A DNA stretch of 12,220 nt from NCBI RefSeq assembly GCF_006345805.1, contig NW_021826682.1, positions 1-12,220 on the forward strand, in the 5' to 3' direction. Shown one piece after another: positions 1 through 8,550 of this stretch. The notes under the pieces were generated by a model that was not told the DNA's origin, did not search any database, and saw nothing but the letters and a program-made list of their open reading frames with translations. Origin of the DNA: Octopus sinensis (Eukaryota). Positions within the stretch are counted from its first letter, which is position 1; each line of letters opens with the position of its first letter. The position numbers and the translations under genes were made by a program.

Positions 1-1
1 G

Positions 2-160
2 AATTTCAGCCAATCACGTACCTCAAGGGGAAAATACTGCCACTCTCGTTTAAAAAAGAATTGAGAATTATTACAACAGGATATTTCATTCAGTATGCAT
101 TTCGGATAGAAGCTGGAAGGTGAGACAAAAAATATATATGAGGCAATAGAATATTCAGAT
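2..160 (+). repeat. Diverged direct repeat A, paired with 10756-10911
   Basis: AATTTCAGCCAATCAC...TACTGCCACTC...TTTCGGATAG...GTGAGACAAAAA...CAATAGAAT is colinear in both copies, with many substitutions. Confidence 0.85.
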
Positions 161-388
161 AAGTGGATAAGACTTTTAATTTCTGTATAAAATTTGAAAC
201 TGAAGTAATATTTGGAGTCGGCGTTATAAAGGTAAACCAATTTTTATTACATTTCTTTTAAGAGATATCATTTATATACACACACACATATATATGATTT
301 ATTTTTCCCTCTCTCTCTATCTTTCTATAACTATGCAACTTAATAGAATAATGTTGTTCCTGACAATCATTTGTCGGTGAGCATTTGG

Positions 389-649
389 TTCCAAGCAGCC
401 ATAACGTTGTTACATGCACGTCAGAATTATTATTTAAATATTTGTTTGTCTTGTTCATCCTGTATAAAGACTTATACATAAACACACATGCATAGGCGTG
501 GCTATGTGGTAAGATAGATGGTTCGCAAGCAGATAGATCCAGGTTCAGTTTCACTGCATGGCAATTTGGGAAAGTGTCTTCTACTATAGCCTCGGGCTGA
601 CCAAAGCCGTACGAGTGGATTTGGTAGACGAAAAAACCGAAAGAAGTTC

Positions 650-650
<1 letters not shown>
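389..650 (+). repeat. Diverged direct repeat B (SINE head plus ~105 bp upstream flank), paired with 9758-10015
   Basis: TTCCAAGCA.CCATAACGTTGTTACA...GACTTATACATAAACACACAT.CATAGGCGTGG is shared upstream of both SINE heads. Confidence 0.9.
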
Positions 651-699
<49 letters not shown>

Positions 700-773
700 T
701 ATAAATATATATAATATATATAACATATATAATATATAAATATATATATATATATACATATATAAATATATAT

Positions 774-804
<31 letters not shown>

Positions 805-1070
805 GTTGATGCATAAGTGTGTGTGAGTTTGTTTGTTTGTGTATGTGTGTGTCTGTCTTCGCGACTATGTTTGTTACCCTTTCATAACTTACTGCAGGTT
901 TTAACGCCCCCTCCTTAACATTGCGGTTCGGCAAAAGCGGACAATAAAATAAGTACTTGGCTTACAAAGAATAATCCCTGATGTCAATGTATTGGGCTTA
1001 AAGGCTTATGATATTGTGCTCCAGCATGGACGCAGGCAAATGACTTCAACATGTAAAAGAATTAAAGAAA
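495..1070 (+). mobile_element. tRNA-derived SINE with an internal (TA)n/(GT)n tract, Octopus-like
   Basis: A-box-like TGGCTATGTGG (499-509) and B-box-like GGTTCAGTTTC (542-552), then the body CTACTATAGCCTCGGGCTGACCAAAGCC, the microsatellite, and the tail GCGGTTCGGCAAAAG...GTGCTCCAGCATGG...GTAAAAGAA. The layout matches a SINE I recall from Octopus genomes; not database-verified. Confidence 0.7.
654..853. repeat. (TA)n then (GT)n microsatellite inside the SINE
   Basis: Seen directly. Confidence 0.95.
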
Positions 1071-1084
1071 AAGTATAAACATTG

Positions 1085-1153
1085 ATATATGTGTGTGCTT
1101 ATGTGTGTGTATATATATAAATGCGTATGAATACATATATAAGTATTTATATA

Positions 1154-1186
<33 letters not shown>
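1085..1186. repeat. (TG)n/(TA)n simple repeat abutting the left end of the array
   Basis: Pure TA run at ~1156-1186. Confidence 0.9.
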
Positions 1187-1189
<3 letters not shown>

Positions 1190-1315
1190 CAATTAAGGAA
1201 CGGCCATAATAGGCCATTCACCCACTAGAAATAACAGCCAAAGCTTCTACCGCAAATAAAGATCAATTCCGTTAACAGGAGAAAATTAAAAAAAAAAAAA
1301 AACATTTACCCTGTA

Positions 1316-1422
1316 ATTTCTTGTACGGTATACCGTTTCATTCGCTGTTTAATGGTAAACTAACCTGATTAAATTAAATCAAGCCAATCTTCCATAAGCC
1401 CTCGAATTCTTCAGCAAGAAAT
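1316..1422 (-). ncRNA. Type I hammerhead ribozyme, copy L1
   Basis: Exact reverse complement of the 107-nt consensus HHR (stem I, CUGAAGA, stem II, GAAA, stem III, GUA, stem I'). Confidence 0.85.
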
Positions 1423-1808
1423 AGCTCAAGTCGGAACAGATATTTACACGAGGCATCTCGAACCTTGCCAAGGCAATATCTGACCTAAAATTTTCAAATC
1501 GTCGCACTCGCGCAAAATTATCGGCAGCAATAAAATCAGCCGTCGATTCCATTACGGAATTAACCAAAAAATTCATAATTAATCAATATAGGGTAGCAAG
1601 GAAAATTTTGTAGAAATTTATTGCCACCAGCGGCCTAGTGGGAAAAAAATTAAATAGTCATAGACCATTTTTAAGTTCAACATTAACAATTAAGGAACGG
1701 CCATAATAGGCCATTCACCCACTAGAAATAACAGCCAAAGCTTCTACCGCAAATAAAGATCAATTCCGTTAACAGGAGAAAATTAAAAAAAAAAACATTT
1801 ACCCTGTA

Positions 1809-1914
1809 ATTTCTTGTACGGTATACCGTTTCATTCGCTGTTTAATGGTAACTAACCTGATTAAATTAAATCAAGCCAATCTTCCATAAGCCCTCGAATT
1901 CTTCAGCAAGAAAT
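1809..1914 (-). ncRNA. Type I hammerhead ribozyme, copy L2
   Basis: Core intact; 1-nt deletion in the distal stem II extension. Confidence 0.83.
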
Positions 1915-2304
1915 AGCTCAAGTCGGAACAGATATTTAACGAGGCATCTCGAACCTTGCCAAGGCAATATCTGACCTAAAATTTTCAAATCGTCGCACTC
2001 GCGCCAAATTTATCGGCAGCAAATAAATATCAGCCGTCGATTCCATTACGGAATTAACCAAAAAATTCATAATTAATCAATATAGGGTAGCAAGGAAAAT
2101 TTTGTAGAAATTTATTGCCACCAGCGGCCCAGTGGGAAAAAAATTAAATAGTCATAGACCATTTTTAAGTTCAACATTAACAATTAAGGAACGGCCATAA
2201 TAGGCCATTCACCCACTAGAAATAACAGCCAAAGCTTCTACCGCAAATAAGATCAATTCCGTTAACAGGAGAAAATTAAAAAAAAAAAAAACATTTACCC
2301 TGTA

Positions 2305-2411
2305 ATTTCTTGTACGGTATACCGTTTCATTCGCTGTTTAATGGTAAACTAACCTGATTAAATTAAATCAAGCCAATCTTCCATAAGCCCTCGAATTCTT
2401 CAGCAAGAAAT
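2305..2411 (-). ncRNA. Type I hammerhead ribozyme, copy L3
   Basis: Matches the consensus HHR on the minus strand. Confidence 0.85.
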
Positions 2412-2794
2412 AGCTCAAGTCGGAACAGATATTTACACGAGGCATCTCGAACCTTGCCAAGGCAATATCTGACCTAAAATTTTCAAATCGTCGCACTCGC
2501 GCCAAATTTATCGGCAGCAAATAAATATCAGCCGTCGATTCCATTACGGAATTAACCAAAAAATTCATAATTAATCAATATAGGGTAGCAAGGAAAATTT
2601 TGTAGAAATTTATTGCCACCAGCGGCCCAGTGGGAAAAAAAATAAATAGTCATAGACCATTTTTAGTTCAACATTAACAATTAAGGAACGGCATAATAGG
2701 CCATTCACCCACTAGAAATAACAGCCAAAGCTTCTACCGCAATAAAGATCAATTCCGTTAACAGGAGAAAATTAAAAAAAACATTTACCCTGTA

Positions 2795-2901
2795 ATTTCT
2801 TGTACGGTATACCGTTTCATTCGCTGTTTAATGGTAAACTAACCTGATTAAATTAAATCAAGCCAATCTTCCATAAGCCCTCGAATTCTTCAGCAAGAAA
2901 T
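2795..2901 (-). ncRNA. Type I hammerhead ribozyme, copy L4
   Basis: Matches the consensus HHR on the minus strand. Confidence 0.85.
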
Positions 2902-3284
2902 AGCTCAAGTCGGAACAGATATTTACACGAGGCATCTCGAACTTGCCAAGGCAATATCTGACCTAAAATTTTCAAATCGTCGCACTCGCGCCAAATTTAT
3001 CGGCAGCAAATAAATATCAGCCGTCGATTCCATTACGGAATTAACAAAAAATTCATAATTAATCAATATAGGGTAGCAAGGAAAATTTTCTAGAAATATA
3101 TTGCCACCAGCGGCCCAGTGGGAAAAAAATTAAATAGTCATAGACCATTTTTAAGTTCAACATTAACAATTAAGGAACGGCCATAATAGGCCATTCACCC
3201 ACTAGAAAAACAGCCAAAGCTTCTACCGCAAATAAAGATCAATTCCGTTAACAGGAGAAAATTAAAAAAAACATTTACCCTGTA

Positions 3285-3390
3285 ATTTCTTGTACGGTAT
3301 ACCGTTTCATTCGCTGTTTAATGGTAAACTAACCTGATTAAATTAAATCAAGCCAATCTTCCATAAGCCCTCGAATCTTCAGCAAGAAAT
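3285..3390 (-). ncRNA. Type I hammerhead ribozyme, copy L5 (1-nt deletion at the core/stem II junction)
   Basis: Sense reads CTGAAGATTCG instead of CTGAAGAATTCG; the rest is consensus. Confidence 0.75.
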
Positions 3391-3946
3391 AGCTCAAGTC
3401 GGAACAGATATTTACACGAGGCATCTCGAACCTTGCCAAGGCAATATCTGACCTAAAATTTTCAAATCGTCGCACTCGCGCCAAATTTATCGGCAGCAAA
3501 TAAAAATATCAGCCGTCGATTCCATTACGGAATTAACCAAAAAATTCATAATTAATCAATATAGGGTAGCAAGGAAAATTTTGTAGAAATTTATTGCCAC
3601 CAGCGGCCCAGTGGGAAAAAAATTAAATAGTCATAGACCATTTTTAAGTTCAACATTAACAAATGGCCGTTCCTTAATTGTTAATGTTGAACTGAAAAAT
3701 GGTCTATGACTATTTAATTTTTTTTCCACTGGGCCGCTGGTGGCAATAAATTTCTACAAAATTTTCCTTGCTACCCTATATGATTAATTATGAATTTTTT
3801 GGTTAATTCCGTAATGGAATCGACGGCTGATATTTATTTGCTGCCGATAAATTTGGCGCGAGTGCGACGATTTGAAAATTTTAGGTCAGATATTGCCTTG
3901 GCAAGGTTCGAGATGCCTCGTGTAAATATCTGTTCCGACTTGAGCT

Positions 3947-4053
3947 ATTTCTTGCTGAAGAATTCGAGGGCTTATGGAAGATTGGCTTGATTTAATTTAA
4001 TCAGGTTAGTTTACCATTAAACAGCGAATGAAACGGTATACCGTACAAGAAAT
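3947..4053 (+). ncRNA. Type I hammerhead ribozyme, copy R1 (predicted cleavage after 4045)
   Basis: ATTTCTTG(3947-3954)-CTGAAGA-ATTCG...CGAAT-GAAA-CGG TATA CCG-TA-CAAGAAAT(4046-4053). All three stems close around the conserved core in the correct register. Confidence 0.88.
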
Positions 4054-4439
4054 TACAGGGTAAATGTTTTTTTTAATTTTCTCCTGTTAACGGAATTGAT
4101 CTTTATTTGCGGTAGAAGCTTTGGCTGTTATTTCTAGTGGGTGAATGGCCTATTATGGCCGTTCCTTAATTGTTAATGTTGAACTTAAAAATGGTCTATG
4201 ACTATTTAATTTTTTTCCCACTGGGCCGCTGGTGGCAATAAATTTCTACAAAATTTTCCTTGCTACCCTATATTGATTAATTATGAATTTTTTGGTTAAT
4301 TCCGTAATGGAATCGACGGCTGATATTTATTTGCTGCCGATAAATTTGGCGCGAGTGCGACGATTTGAAAATTTTAGGTCAGATATTGCCTTGGCAAGGT
4401 TCGAGATGCCTCGTGTAAATATCTGTTCCGACTTGAGCT

Positions 4440-4545
4440 ATTTCTTGCTGAAGAATTCGAGGCTTATGGAAGATTGGCTTGATTTAATTTAATCAGGTTA
4501 GTTTACCATTAAACAGCGAATGAAACGGTATACCGTACAAGAAAT
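4440..4545 (+). ncRNA. Type I hammerhead ribozyme, copy R2
   Basis: Core intact; one G missing in the stem II internal loop. Confidence 0.85.
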
Positions 4546-4937
4546 TACAGGGTAAATGTTTTTTTTTTTAATTTTCTCCTGTTAACGGAATTGATCTTTA
4601 TTTGCGGTGGTAGAAGCTTTGGTGTTATTTCTAGTGGGTGAATGGCCTATTATGGCCGTTCCTTAATTGTTATGTTGAACTTAAAAATGGTCTATGACTA
4701 TTTAATTTTTTTCCCACTGGGCCGCTGGTGGCAATAAATTTCTACAAAATTTTCCTTGCTACCCTATATTGATTATTATTATGAATTTTTTGGTTAATTC
4801 CGTAATGGAATCGACGGCTGATATTTATTTGCTGCCGATAAATTTGGCGCGAGTGCGACGATTTGAAAATTTTAGGTCAGATATTGCCTTGGCAAGGTTC
4901 GAGATGCCTCGTGTAAATATCTGTTCCGACTTGAGCT

Positions 4938-5044
4938 ATTTCTTGCTGAAGAATTCGAGGGCTTATGGAAGATTGGCTTGATTTAATTTAATCAGGTTAG
5001 TTTACCATTAAACAGCGAATGAAACGGTATACCGTACAAGAAAT
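4938..5044 (+). ncRNA. Type I hammerhead ribozyme, copy R3
   Basis: Consensus HHR. Confidence 0.87.
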
Positions 5045-5441
5045 TACAGGGTAAATGTTTTTTTTAATTTTCTCCTGTTAACGGAATTGATCTTTATTTG
5101 CGGTAGAAGCTTGCGGTAGAAGCTTTGGCTGTTATTTCTAGTGGGTGAATGGCCTATTATGGCCGTTCCTTAATTGTTAAGTTGAACTTAAAAATGGTCT
5201 ATGACTATTTAATTTTTTTCCCACTGGGCCGCTGGTGGCAATAAATTTCTACAAAATTTTCCTTGCTACCCTATTGATTAATTATGAATTTTTTGGTTAA
5301 TTCCGTAATGGAATCGACGGCTGATATATTATTTGCTGCCGATAAATTTGGCGCGAGTGCGACGATTTGAAAATTTTAGGTCAGATATTGCCTTGGCAAG
5401 GTTCGAGATGCCTCGTGTAAATATCTGTTCCGACTTGAGCT

Positions 5442-5551
5442 ATTTCTTGCTGAAGAATTCGAGGGCTTATGGAAGATTGGCTTGATTTAATTTAATCAGG
5501 TTAGTTTACCATTAAACAGCGAATGAAACGGTATACCGTCGTACAAGAAAT
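5442..5551 (+). ncRNA. Type I hammerhead ribozyme, copy R4 (3-nt duplication at the cleavage site)
   Basis: Reads ...TATACCGTCGTACAAG, a CGT duplication that puts the cleavage site out of register. Confidence 0.65.
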
Positions 5552-5950
5552 TACAGGGTAATGTAAATGTTTTTTTTTTTTTTTAATTTTTTCTCCTGTT
5601 AACGGAATTGATCTTTATTTGCGGTAGAAGCTTTGGCTGTTATTTCTAGTGGGTGAATGGCCTATTATGGCCGTTCCTTAATTGTTAATGTTGAACTTAA
5701 AAATGGTCTATGACTATTTAATTTTTTTCCCACTGGGCCGCTGGTGGCAATAAATTTTACAAAATTTTCCTTGTACCCTATATTGATTAATTATGAATTT
5801 TTTGGTTAATTCCGTAATGGAACCGACGGCTGATATTTATTTGCTGCCGATATAAATTGGCGCGAGTGCGACGATTTGAAAATTTTAGGTCAGATATTGC
5901 CTTGGCAAGGTTCGAGATGCCTCGTGTAAATATCTGTTCCGACTTGAGCT

Positions 5951-6057
5951 ATTTCTTGCTGAAGAATTCGAGGGCTTATGGAAGATTGGCTTGATTTAAT
6001 TTAATCAGGTTAGTTTACCATTAAACAGCGAATGAAACGGTATACCGTACAAGAAAT
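5951..6057 (+). ncRNA. Type I hammerhead ribozyme, copy R5
   Basis: Consensus HHR. Confidence 0.87.
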
Positions 6058-6459
6058 TACAGGGTAAATGTTTTTTTTTTTTTTTTAATTTTCTCCTGTG
6101 TTAACGGAATTGATCTTTATTTGCGGTAGAGAAGCTTGGCTGTTATTTCTAGTGGGTGAATGGCCTATTATGGCCGTTCCTTAATTGTTAATGTTGAACT
6201 AAAAATGGTCTATGACTATTTAATTTTTTTCCACTGGGCCTGGTGCCGCTGGTGGCAATAAATTTCTACAAAATTTTCCTTGCTACCCTATATTGATTAA
6301 TTATGAATTTTTTGGTTAATTCCGTAATGGAACCGACGGCTGATATTTATTTGCTGCCGATAAATTTGGCGCGAGTGCGACGATTTGAAAATTTTAGGTC
6401 AGATATTGCCTTGGCAAGGTTCGAGATGCCTCGTGTAAATATCTGTTCCGACTTGAGCT

Positions 6460-6565
6460 ATTTCTTGCTGAAGAATTCGAGGGCTTATGGAAGATTGGCT
6501 TGATTTAATTTAATCAGGTTAGTTTACCATTAACAGCGAATGAAACGGTATACCGTACAAGAAAT
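6460..6565 (+). ncRNA. Type I hammerhead ribozyme, copy R6
   Basis: Core intact; one A missing in the stem II internal loop. Confidence 0.85.
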
Positions 6566-6960
6566 TACAGGGTAAATGTTTTTTTTTTTTTTTTTAATTT
6601 TCTCCTGTTAACGGAATTGATCTTTATTTGCGGTAGAAGCTTTGGCTGTTATTTCTAGTGGGTGAATGGCCTATTATGGCCGTTCCTTAATTGTTAATGT
6701 TGAACTTAAAAATGGTCTATGACTATTTAATTTTTTTCCCACTGGGCCGCTGGTGGCAATAAATTTCTACAAAATTTTCCTTGCTACCCTATATTGATTA
6801 ATTATGAATTTTTTGGTTAATTCCGTAATGGAATCGACGGCTGATATTTATTTGCTGCCGATAAATTTGGCGCGAGTGCGACGATTTGAAAATTTTAGGT
6901 CAGATATTGCCTTGGCAAGGTTCGAGATGCCTCGTGTAAATATCTGTTCCGACTTGAGCT

Positions 6961-7067
6961 ATTTCTTGCTGAAGAATTCGAGGGCTTATGGAAGATTGGC
7001 TTGATTTAATTTAATCAGGTTAGTTTACCATTAAACAGCGAATGAAACGGTATACCGTACAAGAAAT
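6961..7067 (+). ncRNA. Type I hammerhead ribozyme, copy R7
   Basis: Consensus HHR. Confidence 0.87.
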
Positions 7068-7454
7068 TACAGGGTAAATGTTTTTTTTAATTTTCTCCTG
7101 TTAACGGAATTGATCTTTATTTGCGGTAGAGAAAGCTTTGGCTGTTATTTCTAGTGGGTGAATGGCCTATTATGGCCGTTCCTTAATTGTTAATGTTGAA
7201 CTTAAAAATGGTCTATGACTATTTAATTTTTTTCCCACTGGGCCGCTGGTGGCAAAAATTTCTACAAAATTTTCCTTGCTACCCTATATTGATTAATTAT
7301 GAATTTTTTGGTTAATTCGTAATGGAACCGACGGCTGATATTTATTTGCTGCCGATAAATTTGGCGCGAGTGCGACGATTTGAAAATTTTAGGTCAGATA
7401 TTGCCTTGGCAAGGTTCGAGATGCCTCGTGTAAATATCTGTTCCGACTTGAGCT

Positions 7455-7561
7455 ATTTCTTGCTGAAGAATTCGAGGGCTTATGGAAGATTGGCTTGATT
7501 TAATTTAATCAGGTTAGTTTACCATTAAACAGCGAATGAAACGGTATACCGTACAAGAAAT
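7455..7561 (+). ncRNA. Type I hammerhead ribozyme, copy R8
   Basis: Consensus HHR. Confidence 0.87.
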
Positions 7562-7953
7562 TACAGGGTAAATGTTTTTTTTTTTTTTTAATTTTCTCCT
7601 GTTAACGGAATTGATCTTTATTTGCGGTAGAAGCTTTGGCTGTTATTTCTAGTGGGTGAATGGCCTATTATGGCCGTTCCTTAATTGTTAATGTTGAACT
7701 TAAAAATGGTCTATGACTATTTAATTTTTTTCCCACTGGGCCGCTGGTGGCAATAAATTTCTACAAAATTTTCCTTGCTACCCTATATTGATTAATTATG
7801 AATTTTTTGGTTAATTCCGTAATGGAATCGACGGCTGATATTTATTTGCTGCCGATAAATTTGGCGCGAGTGCGACGATTGAAAATTTTAGGTCAGATAT
7901 TGCCTTGGCAAGGTTCGAGATGCCTCGTGTAAATATCTGTTCCGACTTGAGCT

Positions 7954-8060
7954 ATTTCTTGCTGAAGAATTCGAGGGCTTATGGAAGATTGGCTTGATTT
8001 AATTTAATCAGGTTAGTTTACCATTAAACAGCGAATGAAACGGTATACCGTACAAGAAAT
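7954..8060 (+). ncRNA. Type I hammerhead ribozyme, copy R9
   Basis: Consensus HHR. Confidence 0.87.
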
Positions 8061-8444
8061 TGCAGGGTAAATGTTTTTTTTTTTTCTCCTGTTAACGGAA
8101 TTGATCTTTATTTGCGGTAGAAGCTTTGGCTGTTATTTCTAGTGGGTGAATGGCCTATTATGGCCGTTCCTTAATTGTTAATGTTGAACTTAAAAATGGT
8201 CTATGACTATTTAATTTTTTTCCCACTGGGCCGCTGGTGGCAATAAATTTCTACAAAATTTTCCTTGCTACCCTATATTGATTAATTATGAATTTTTTGG
8301 TTAATTCCGTAATGGAATCGACGGCTGATATTTATTTGCTGCCGATAAATTTGGCGCGAGTGCGACGATTTGAAAATTTTAGGTCAGATATTGCCTTGGC
8401 AAGGTTCGAGATGCCTCGTGTAAATATCTGTTCCGACTTGAGCT

Positions 8445-8550
8445 ATTTCTTGCTGAAGAATTCGAGGGCTTATGGAAGATTGGCTTGATTTAATTTAATC
8501 AGGTTGTTTACCATTAACCAGCGAATGAAACGGTATACCGTACAAGAAAT
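8445..8550 (+). ncRNA. Type I hammerhead ribozyme, copy R10
   Basis: Core intact; 1-nt deletion and one substitution in the stem II extension. Confidence 0.83.

Follow-up and report, generated by a model that had tools for sequence, protein, structure and literature searches.

The question raised by this locus is whether a tandem repeat of about 500 bp in the genome of Octopus sinensis carries a hammerhead ribozyme in each of its units and, if so, to which class of element the repeat belongs. The window, that is, the whole stretch of DNA that was analysed, comprises the 12,220 nucleotides of contig NW_021826682.1 from position 1 to 12,220. Hammerhead-bearing repeats of animals have been known since 1987 and have been catalogued genome-wide; classically regarded as satellite DNA, they are now called non-LTR retrozymes. 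In many animals, abundant small circular RNAs originate from such tandem repeats in the genome; the way in which the repeats are mobilised is still being worked out. An array of 16 units, formed by a 493-bp AT-rich repeat without coding capacity and with a type I hammerhead motif in each unit, lies in the window; it is likely a non-LTR retrozyme of the metazoan type, acting by the mechanism outlined below. The repeat is probably a new family within an already known class, and no new category is opened by this locus.

Anatomy and predicted fold of the hammerhead motif

The preliminary description had listed the elements of a type I hammerhead between 3947 and 4053 on the plus strand, and a reading of the sequence from 3850 to 4150 located every one of them where it had been placed. 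The elements are as follows.

3947 to 4053, plus strand: reference type I hammerhead, 107 nt
3947 to 3954, plus strand: helix I 5' strand, AUUUCUUG (sequence reading, fold)
3955 to 3961, plus strand: core C3 to A9, CUGAAGA (C3 U4 G5 A6 A7 G8 A9; sequence reading, Rfam alignment)
3962 to 4029, plus strand: helix II, a 68-nt rod (fold -23.5 kcal/mol, z -5.86)
4030 to 4032, plus strand: core G12 A13 A14 (sequence reading, Rfam alignment)
4033 to 4044, plus strand: helix III, ACGGUAUACCGU (A15.1-U16.1, three G-C pairs, CGG/CCG, and a UAUA loop)
4045 to 4046, plus strand: predicted cleavage site, A4045 (H17) / C4046 (1.1), from its position in the motif
4046 to 4053, plus strand: helix I 3' strand, CAAGAAAU (sequence reading, fold)

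Helix I is composed of eight uninterrupted Watson-Crick pairs between ATTTCTTG (3947-3954) and CAAGAAAT (4046-4053). The base of helix II consists of five pairs between ATTCG (3962-3966) and CGAAT (4025-4029), the first of which is A10.1-U11.1; beyond this base follow an internal loop, a 4-bp stem, a 1x1 loop, a 14-bp stem and a hexaloop, such that the 58 nt separating the two halves of helix II extend the rod and do not form an open loop. GAAA occupies 4030-4033 of the plus strand, and its last residue, A4033, pairs with T4044 in helix III. The helix III sequence is a perfect palindrome of 12 nt, with a calculated energy of -2.9 kcal/mol as a hairpin versus -18.8 kcal/mol as a self-duplex. 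Cleavage had been proposed to occur after 4045, and the GUA/C found there matches the correct position of H17 for the predicted cut.

In the RNAfold check, the minimum free energy (MFE) structure of 3947-4053 coincides with the centroid and is the hammerhead three-way junction (-32.9 kcal/mol, z = -4.84), a value that none of 200 shuffled sequences equalled. Helix I is open and helices II and III are closed in both structures, in agreement with the type I assignment. Thirteen of the 15 canonical core positions are exact. The invariant core set, including A15.1-U16.1, is intact, and H17 is A, i.e. not G. The other two positions constitute the 10.1-11.1 pair, in which G-C is changed to A-U with pairing preserved. 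This A-U pair at the start of stem II had already been pointed out, and it is observed as A3962-U4029; the G10.1-C11.1 identity is absent and the pairing is kept. In the literature, 15.1-16.1 is the only helix pair ranked as more conserved than G10.1-C11.1 (PMC3088659, PMC4209133), whose natural exceptions include a U-U mismatch (PMC3088659) and compensatory changes in a cricket satellite (PMC2837043). An alternative register, in which A3962 is taken as the additional residue that separates 9 from 10.1 in hammerheads of Penelope-like elements (PLEs), was rejected because it would leave U4029 unpaired beside G12.

In canonical type I hammerheads of metazoans, helix I has 6 bp and contains an internal loop, helix II has 4 bp, and the loop nucleotides are conserved (PMC4209133). 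None of the canonical loop1-loop2 nucleotides is recognisable here against the Rfam consensus, and the eight base pairs of helix I contain no internal loop. We conjecture that loop 2 could be replaced by the internal loop that follows the first five pairs of helix II.

The search with Rfam Hammerhead_1 (RF00163), which the preliminary description had put forward as a check, failed to retrieve the motif: the whole window was without a match to this model both at the gathering threshold and at E <= 10. When 3930-4075 (146 nt) was searched alone, the full model (1-45) was aligned with 15.7 bits versus a gathering threshold of 34 (E = 0.29), and every core position matched. In the alignment, the score is lowered by 57 nt inserted in loop II and by helix II pairs that depart from the consensus, features that distinguish the motif from the family; the order of elements, the invariant core bases, H17 = A and the full-length alignment are shared with it. 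Sub-threshold matches to mir-297, mir-466 and similar Rfam families at 1097-1165, 9281-9455 and 11417-11491 were dismissed as artefacts of TG/TA microsatellites. The motif at 3947-4053 is probably a genuine hammerhead repeat, for which self-cleavage is predicted.

Copies, array architecture and unit properties

The preliminary description had counted 16 copies, each complete, in units of ~495 bp. The count was reproduced by a search with the 20-nt head of the motif, which found 11 copies on the plus strand and five on the minus strand, but completeness extends only to the 15 that fit the type I descriptor. The sole failure is the minus-strand copy at 3390, because one A is lost in GAAGAATT. 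The unit has a consensus of 493 bp, individual units ranging from 489 to 509 bp. Over the 107 nt of the motif, nine copies are identical and four differ in the helix II extension alone; the other variants are a CGT insertion in the 3' arm of stem III (5442) and the loss of an A from the 3' strand of stem I (8936). The copies besides the reference are the following.

4440 to 4545, plus strand: hammerhead copy; GGG to GG in helix II internal loop; predicted cleavage after 4537
4938 to 5044, plus strand: hammerhead copy; identical to reference; predicted cleavage after 5036
5442 to 5551, plus strand: hammerhead copy; CGT insertion in helix III 3' arm; predicted cleavage after 5543
5951 to 6057, plus strand: hammerhead copy; identical; predicted cleavage after 6049
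6460 to 6565, plus strand: hammerhead copy; AAA to AA in helix II internal loop; predicted cleavage after 6557
6961 to 7067, plus strand: hammerhead copy; identical; predicted cleavage after 7059
7455 to 7561, plus strand: hammerhead copy; identical; predicted cleavage after 7553
7954 to 8060, plus strand: hammerhead copy; identical; predicted cleavage after 8052
8445 to 8550, plus strand: hammerhead copy; two changes in helix II extension; predicted cleavage after 8542
8936 to 9041, plus strand: hammerhead copy; A lost in helix I 3' strand, six contiguous pairs left; predicted cleavage after 9034
3285 to 3390, minus strand: hammerhead copy; 1-nt deletion next to the core (GAAGAAUU to GAAGAUU), 10.1-11.1 pairing register gone
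2795 to 2901, minus strand: hammerhead copy; identical; predicted cleavage after 2803 (sense direction)
2305 to 2411, minus strand: hammerhead copy; identical; predicted cleavage after 2313
1809 to 1914, minus strand: hammerhead copy; UUU to UU in helix II extension; predicted cleavage after 1817
1316 to 1422, minus strand: hammerhead copy; identical; predicted cleavage after 1324

The copy at 5442-5551 (plus strand) still satisfies the descriptor via an alternative helix III. With a loose descriptor (at least 5 pairs in stem I, 4 in stem II and 3 in stem III, G-U allowed), one match was found in 20 Mb of random first-order Markov sequence with the composition of the repeat. The chance of the motif is ~5e-5 per 493-bp unit, both strands counted, and the motif is therefore not a chance string.

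The units are organised into two arms of opposite orientation, bounded by microsatellites.

1131 to 1186, no strand: (TA)n microsatellite, adjoining the minus arm at its 3' end
1185 to 3662, minus strand: minus arm, 5 units + 8 nt (TRF period 490, 5.0 copies, 97% matches)
3663 to 3677, plus strand: head-to-head spacer, 15 nt, consensus positions 209-223
3663 to 9272, plus strand: plus arm, 11 units + 130 nt (TRF period 491, 11.3 copies, 96% matches)
9272 to 9328, no strand: (TA)n microsatellite followed by (TG)n, adjoining the plus arm at its 3' end

Read in the sense direction, the minus arm begins at consensus position 224 (at 3662) and ends at 231 (at 1185), and the plus arm extends from 209 to 338. 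The strand switch lies within 3648-3693, where the 5' ends of the arms face each other head-to-head with the 15-nt spacer in between. Both 3' ends are A/T-only strings of the unit (…TTGTTAAT and …GATTAATTAT) fused directly to (TA)n, which suggests that the array was inserted into a TA microsatellite with microhomology. The limits of a target-site duplication are undefinable, as both ends of the array fall within (TA)n. Direct repeats are shared by the flanks (389-630 with 9758-9999, 85%; 2-152 with 10756-10906, 83%), and the array therefore lies inside another repeated or duplicated sequence that is rich in TA/TG microsatellites. We also note an AG-rich low-complexity tract with a period of about 12-16 in the right flank (11661-11775).

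Insertions of Penelope-like elements are tandem or inverted, frequently carry an inverted, 5'-truncated copy at their 5' end, and lie preferentially in microsatellites, (TA)n among them (PMC8557442). No PLE gene, as an open reading frame (ORF) for reverse transcriptase (RT) or GIY-YIG, was found in the window. The architecture, with its junction known from the assembly, would support a PLE-like retro-insertion of multimeric or circular RNA.

The GC content of the unit is 36% (0.35-0.37). ORFs in the repeat reach 66-70 aa at most (3790-3990, 4283-4492 and equivalents) and overlap the 5' part of the hammerhead; we take them to be spurious and the unit to be non-coding. For annotation, the repeat would be labelled a retrozyme or hammerhead satellite, and the small ORFs marked as spurious. 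A tRNA-like element was not found in the unit, and the identity of a tRNA-derived SINE was ruled out on this ground.

Copies of the unit are 96-97% identical, and their differences are mostly singleton 1-nt indels; 21 of 60 difference events lie in homopolymer context. The most variable site of the repeat is a poly-T tract 3' of the hammerhead, which starts 14 nt downstream of helix I:

4067 to 4074, plus strand: poly-T tract, 8-17 T among units

On the sense strand this tract would be a Pol III terminator, which argues against read-through transcription by Pol III. Within the array, the hammerhead and the rest of the unit do not differ significantly in variation (0.47 vs 0.85 events per 100 nt, p = 0.18); an apparent excess of conservation in the hammerhead at p 0.002 proved to be a product of the truncated end units and the poly-T tract. 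No covariation is seen among the array copies at their 96-97% identity.

Homologues of the hammerhead outside the window were absent from the metagenome, viral and prokaryotic collections searched, with 0 matches among viral contigs and 0 among prokaryotic genome contigs. The metagenome pattern CTGAAGAATTCG-N45-70-CGAATGAAAC gave a single match (L001), a GC-rich bacterial contig without a downstream hammerhead, and this was attributed to chance. Relatives of the repeat's 66-aa ORF were not present in protein collections, none of the window's ORFs had an entry in the contig collection searched, and sequence strings from the repeat were unmatched in the supplements of two retrozyme papers and in the full-text literature searched.

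The predicted RNA of the sense monomer is highly structured, with 59% of its bases paired. Energies of -139.9 kcal/mol (z -4.75) and -137.9 kcal/mol (z -5.4) were calculated for the linear and circular sense monomers; the corresponding antisense values are -91.6 kcal/mol (z -2.2) and -86.4 kcal/mol (z -2.1). When 100 nt of context are added on each side of the hammerhead, helices II and III are kept and helix I is replaced by a competing hairpin:

3939 to 3960, plus strand: competing hairpin (CUU/AAG + AGC/GCU), present in the MFE structure of 3847-4153 and of the whole monomer

This hairpin ties up the core CUGA together with the strand that forms the 5' side of helix I. In the same context, the fold constrained to the hammerhead lies 3.8 kcal/mol above the MFE, and the pair probability of helix I is ~0.003. 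For a transcript ending at 4053, the MFE structure is the hammerhead, which supports a model in which cleavage could take place in a co-transcriptional window and be followed by refolding. Co-transcriptional cleavage with subsequent refolding is described for viroid-like RNAs.

Relation to known hammerhead repeats

The preliminary description had placed the motif among the hammerheads of animal repeats, which fits published accounts of low-GC tandem repeats that contain type I hammerheads (PMC7229834, PMC7761336). Metazoan retrozymes were described as type I hammerheads in low-GC tandem repeats of 150-450 bp that do not contain LTR, PBS or PPT and are expressed as circular RNA (PMC7229834). 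A later preprint gives 51-972 bp for the consensus of retrozyme families and a maximum of 300 units per array, and derives the families from PLE pseudo-LTRs (bioRxiv 10.64898/2026.07.22.740005). We applied a unit size of 150-450 bp (PMC7229834) or 51-972 bp (the 2026 preprint) and a GC content below 45-50%. The array consists of head-to-tail units with a type I hammerhead (16 units, 15 intact) whose GC content lies in this range, and the 493-bp unit exceeds the first-described 150-450 bp and falls inside 51-972 bp. LTR, PBS, PPT and coding capacity are likewise lacking, and the monomer RNA is predicted to be stable and highly self-paired. The palindromic tetraloop of helix III is a further likeness to the metazoan non-LTR retrozymes (Cervera and de la Pena 2020; Li, Clavereau and Pollet 2026). 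In contrast to those elements, in which helix II comprises about 4 bp and a loop, helix II is a 68-nt rod here; helix I is continuous over 8 pairs, A-U takes the place of G-C at 10.1-11.1, and none of the canonical nucleotides of loop 1 and loop 2 can be recognised. Those elements are expressed as unit-length RNA, both linear and circular; the equivalents from the present repeat are hypothetical.

Among individual systems, pDo500 of Dolichopoda cave crickets (PMC2837043) is similar in its tandem unit of ~500 bp with one type I hammerhead each. Its hammerhead is, however, a GC-rich motif of 49 nt (...CTGATGAGGTGGGGGAGACGGAAAGGGTC...) with a short helix II, and identity with pDo500 was rejected since there is no sequence similarity to the published alignment reference. 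Newt satellite 2, axolotl HHR_Amex and Schistosoma Sm-alpha are also type I hammerhead tandem repeats with a palindromic loop 3 enabling a double-hammerhead fold. Transcripts of these three self-cleave, whereas cleavage is predicted here; they have a helix III of 1-2 bp with canonical helix II and loops, in contrast to the 4-bp helix III and extended helix II of the present motif. The hammerheads and insertions of PLE pseudo-LTRs (PMC4209133, PMC8557442) resemble the array in the inverted 5' copy placed head-to-head, the tandem arrangement, the insertion in (TA)n and the type I topology; unlike in PLEs, an RT or GIY-YIG ORF does not accompany the array in the window. Assignment of the motif to the minimal hammerhead of PLE pseudo-LTRs was rejected because helix III has 4 bp, no additional nucleotide fits a consistent register, 10.1-11.1 is A-U and an ORF is absent.

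Proposed mechanism and competing explanations

In the proposed mechanism, the strand carrying the hammerhead in sense would be read through to give a multimeric RNA. Each emerging hammerhead is predicted to fold and would cleave itself after the A of GUA (A4045 and equivalents), either as a single motif with a 4-bp helix III or as two motifs paired via the palindromic helix III. The monomer is predicted to refold to a stable branched structure in which the competing hairpin masks the core. By analogy with the elements described in PMC7229834, it would probably be circularised by a host ligase of the RtcB/tRNA type. New arrays would arise when a PLE enzyme reverse-transcribes the circular or multimeric RNA, a step to which the head-to-head arms and the 3' ends in (TA)n point.

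Several features of the motif could also belong to an ordinary satellite, expanded by unequal crossing-over and replication slippage only, in which the hammerhead-like string is an accident or a decayed, non-cleaving relic. Its Rfam score is sub-threshold, A10.1-U11.1 and the 68-nt helix II are atypical, the tertiary-contact loops are not recognisable, the equilibrium fold in context disfavours helix I, and the hammerhead is free of any conservation excess; the homogeneity of the copies is what amplification at the DNA level is expected to produce. We nevertheless consider the relic distinctly unlikely. The full motif would occur by chance at ~5e-5 per unit, none of the 13 strictly invariant core positions is altered, and the one changed pair keeps its pairing. 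Moreover, the hammerhead is the MFE structure of both the isolated motif and the nascent transcript, the sense strand is far more structured than the antisense strand, and size, GC content and architecture fit the retrozyme class. A different doubt concerns the mode of cleavage in a genuine hammerhead, which may be active exclusively as a double hammerhead via the palindromic helix III, with the monomer or circle protected from cleavage. Metazoan type I hammerheads typically have a palindromic loop 3 and act as dimers (PMC4209133, PMC7229834). The perfect palindrome of ACGGUAUACCGU, the self-duplex at -18.8 versus the hairpin at -2.9 kcal/mol and the cofold of two motifs at -78.8 versus 2 x -32.9 (-65.8) kcal/mol for separate motifs make the double-hammerhead mode possible. 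The helix III of 4 pairs (3 G-C) exceeds the 1-2 bp of the dimer-dependent newt and PLE motifs, however, which renders single-motif cleavage plausible; cleavage as a monomer is documented for retrozyme hammerheads of invertebrates whose helix III is stable (PMC7761336), and adjacent motifs are ~493 nt apart here. Strict dependence on the dimer is thus possible but doubtful.

The third reading concerns the architecture and leaves the motif itself untouched. If the inverted two-arm structure were an artefact of assembly or long reads, or a later fold-back inversion at the DNA level, it would be uninformative on how the array was inserted. Palindromic satellite junctions are a known assembly problem (PMC8557442), and the dominance of 1-nt indels among the copy differences, many of them in homopolymers, suggests error-prone long reads. 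A minus arm that is a mirror fold-back copy of the plus arm was nevertheless rejected, as the unit-by-unit variants do not mirror: the poly-T lengths are 8, 8, 14, 11 versus 8, 11, 8, 15. The outer flanks are not mirror images either and match in direct orientation only, at 83-85%. This lack of mirroring in arms and outer flanks argues against a simple fold-back read artefact, and both outer ends are clean (TA)n junctions. We regard this explanation of the two arms as rather unlikely.

The preferred reading, a metazoan-type non-LTR retrozyme, can be extended to a more specific one. The array may be the intact footprint of a single PLE-mediated integration of circular or multimeric retrozyme RNA from an active lineage that tolerates A10.1-U11.1 and in which the internal loop of helix II replaces loop 2; the combination is unlikely to hold in full. 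Under this extension, reverse transcription would be primed from both sides of a cut (TA)n target where the RNA consists of A and U alone (…UUGUUAAU and …GAUUAAUUAU), the 5 and 11 units would result from rolling-circle cDNA synthesis, and the two cDNAs would meet head-to-head, 15 nt apart and in phase. The readable ends of the array, with head-to-head arms and 3' ends in (TA)n, bear on the proposed mobilisation of retrozymes by PLEs. The A-U pair at 10.1-11.1 and the very long helix II could serve to probe the tolerance of the natural hammerhead scaffold.

Two features of single units in the plus arm may be added. A 13-nt tandem duplication at 5098-5125 (TTGCGGTAGAAGC x 2.2) is private to one unit, and neighbouring units (5442-6460), the longest at 507-509 bp, carry private insertions of 3-6 nt.
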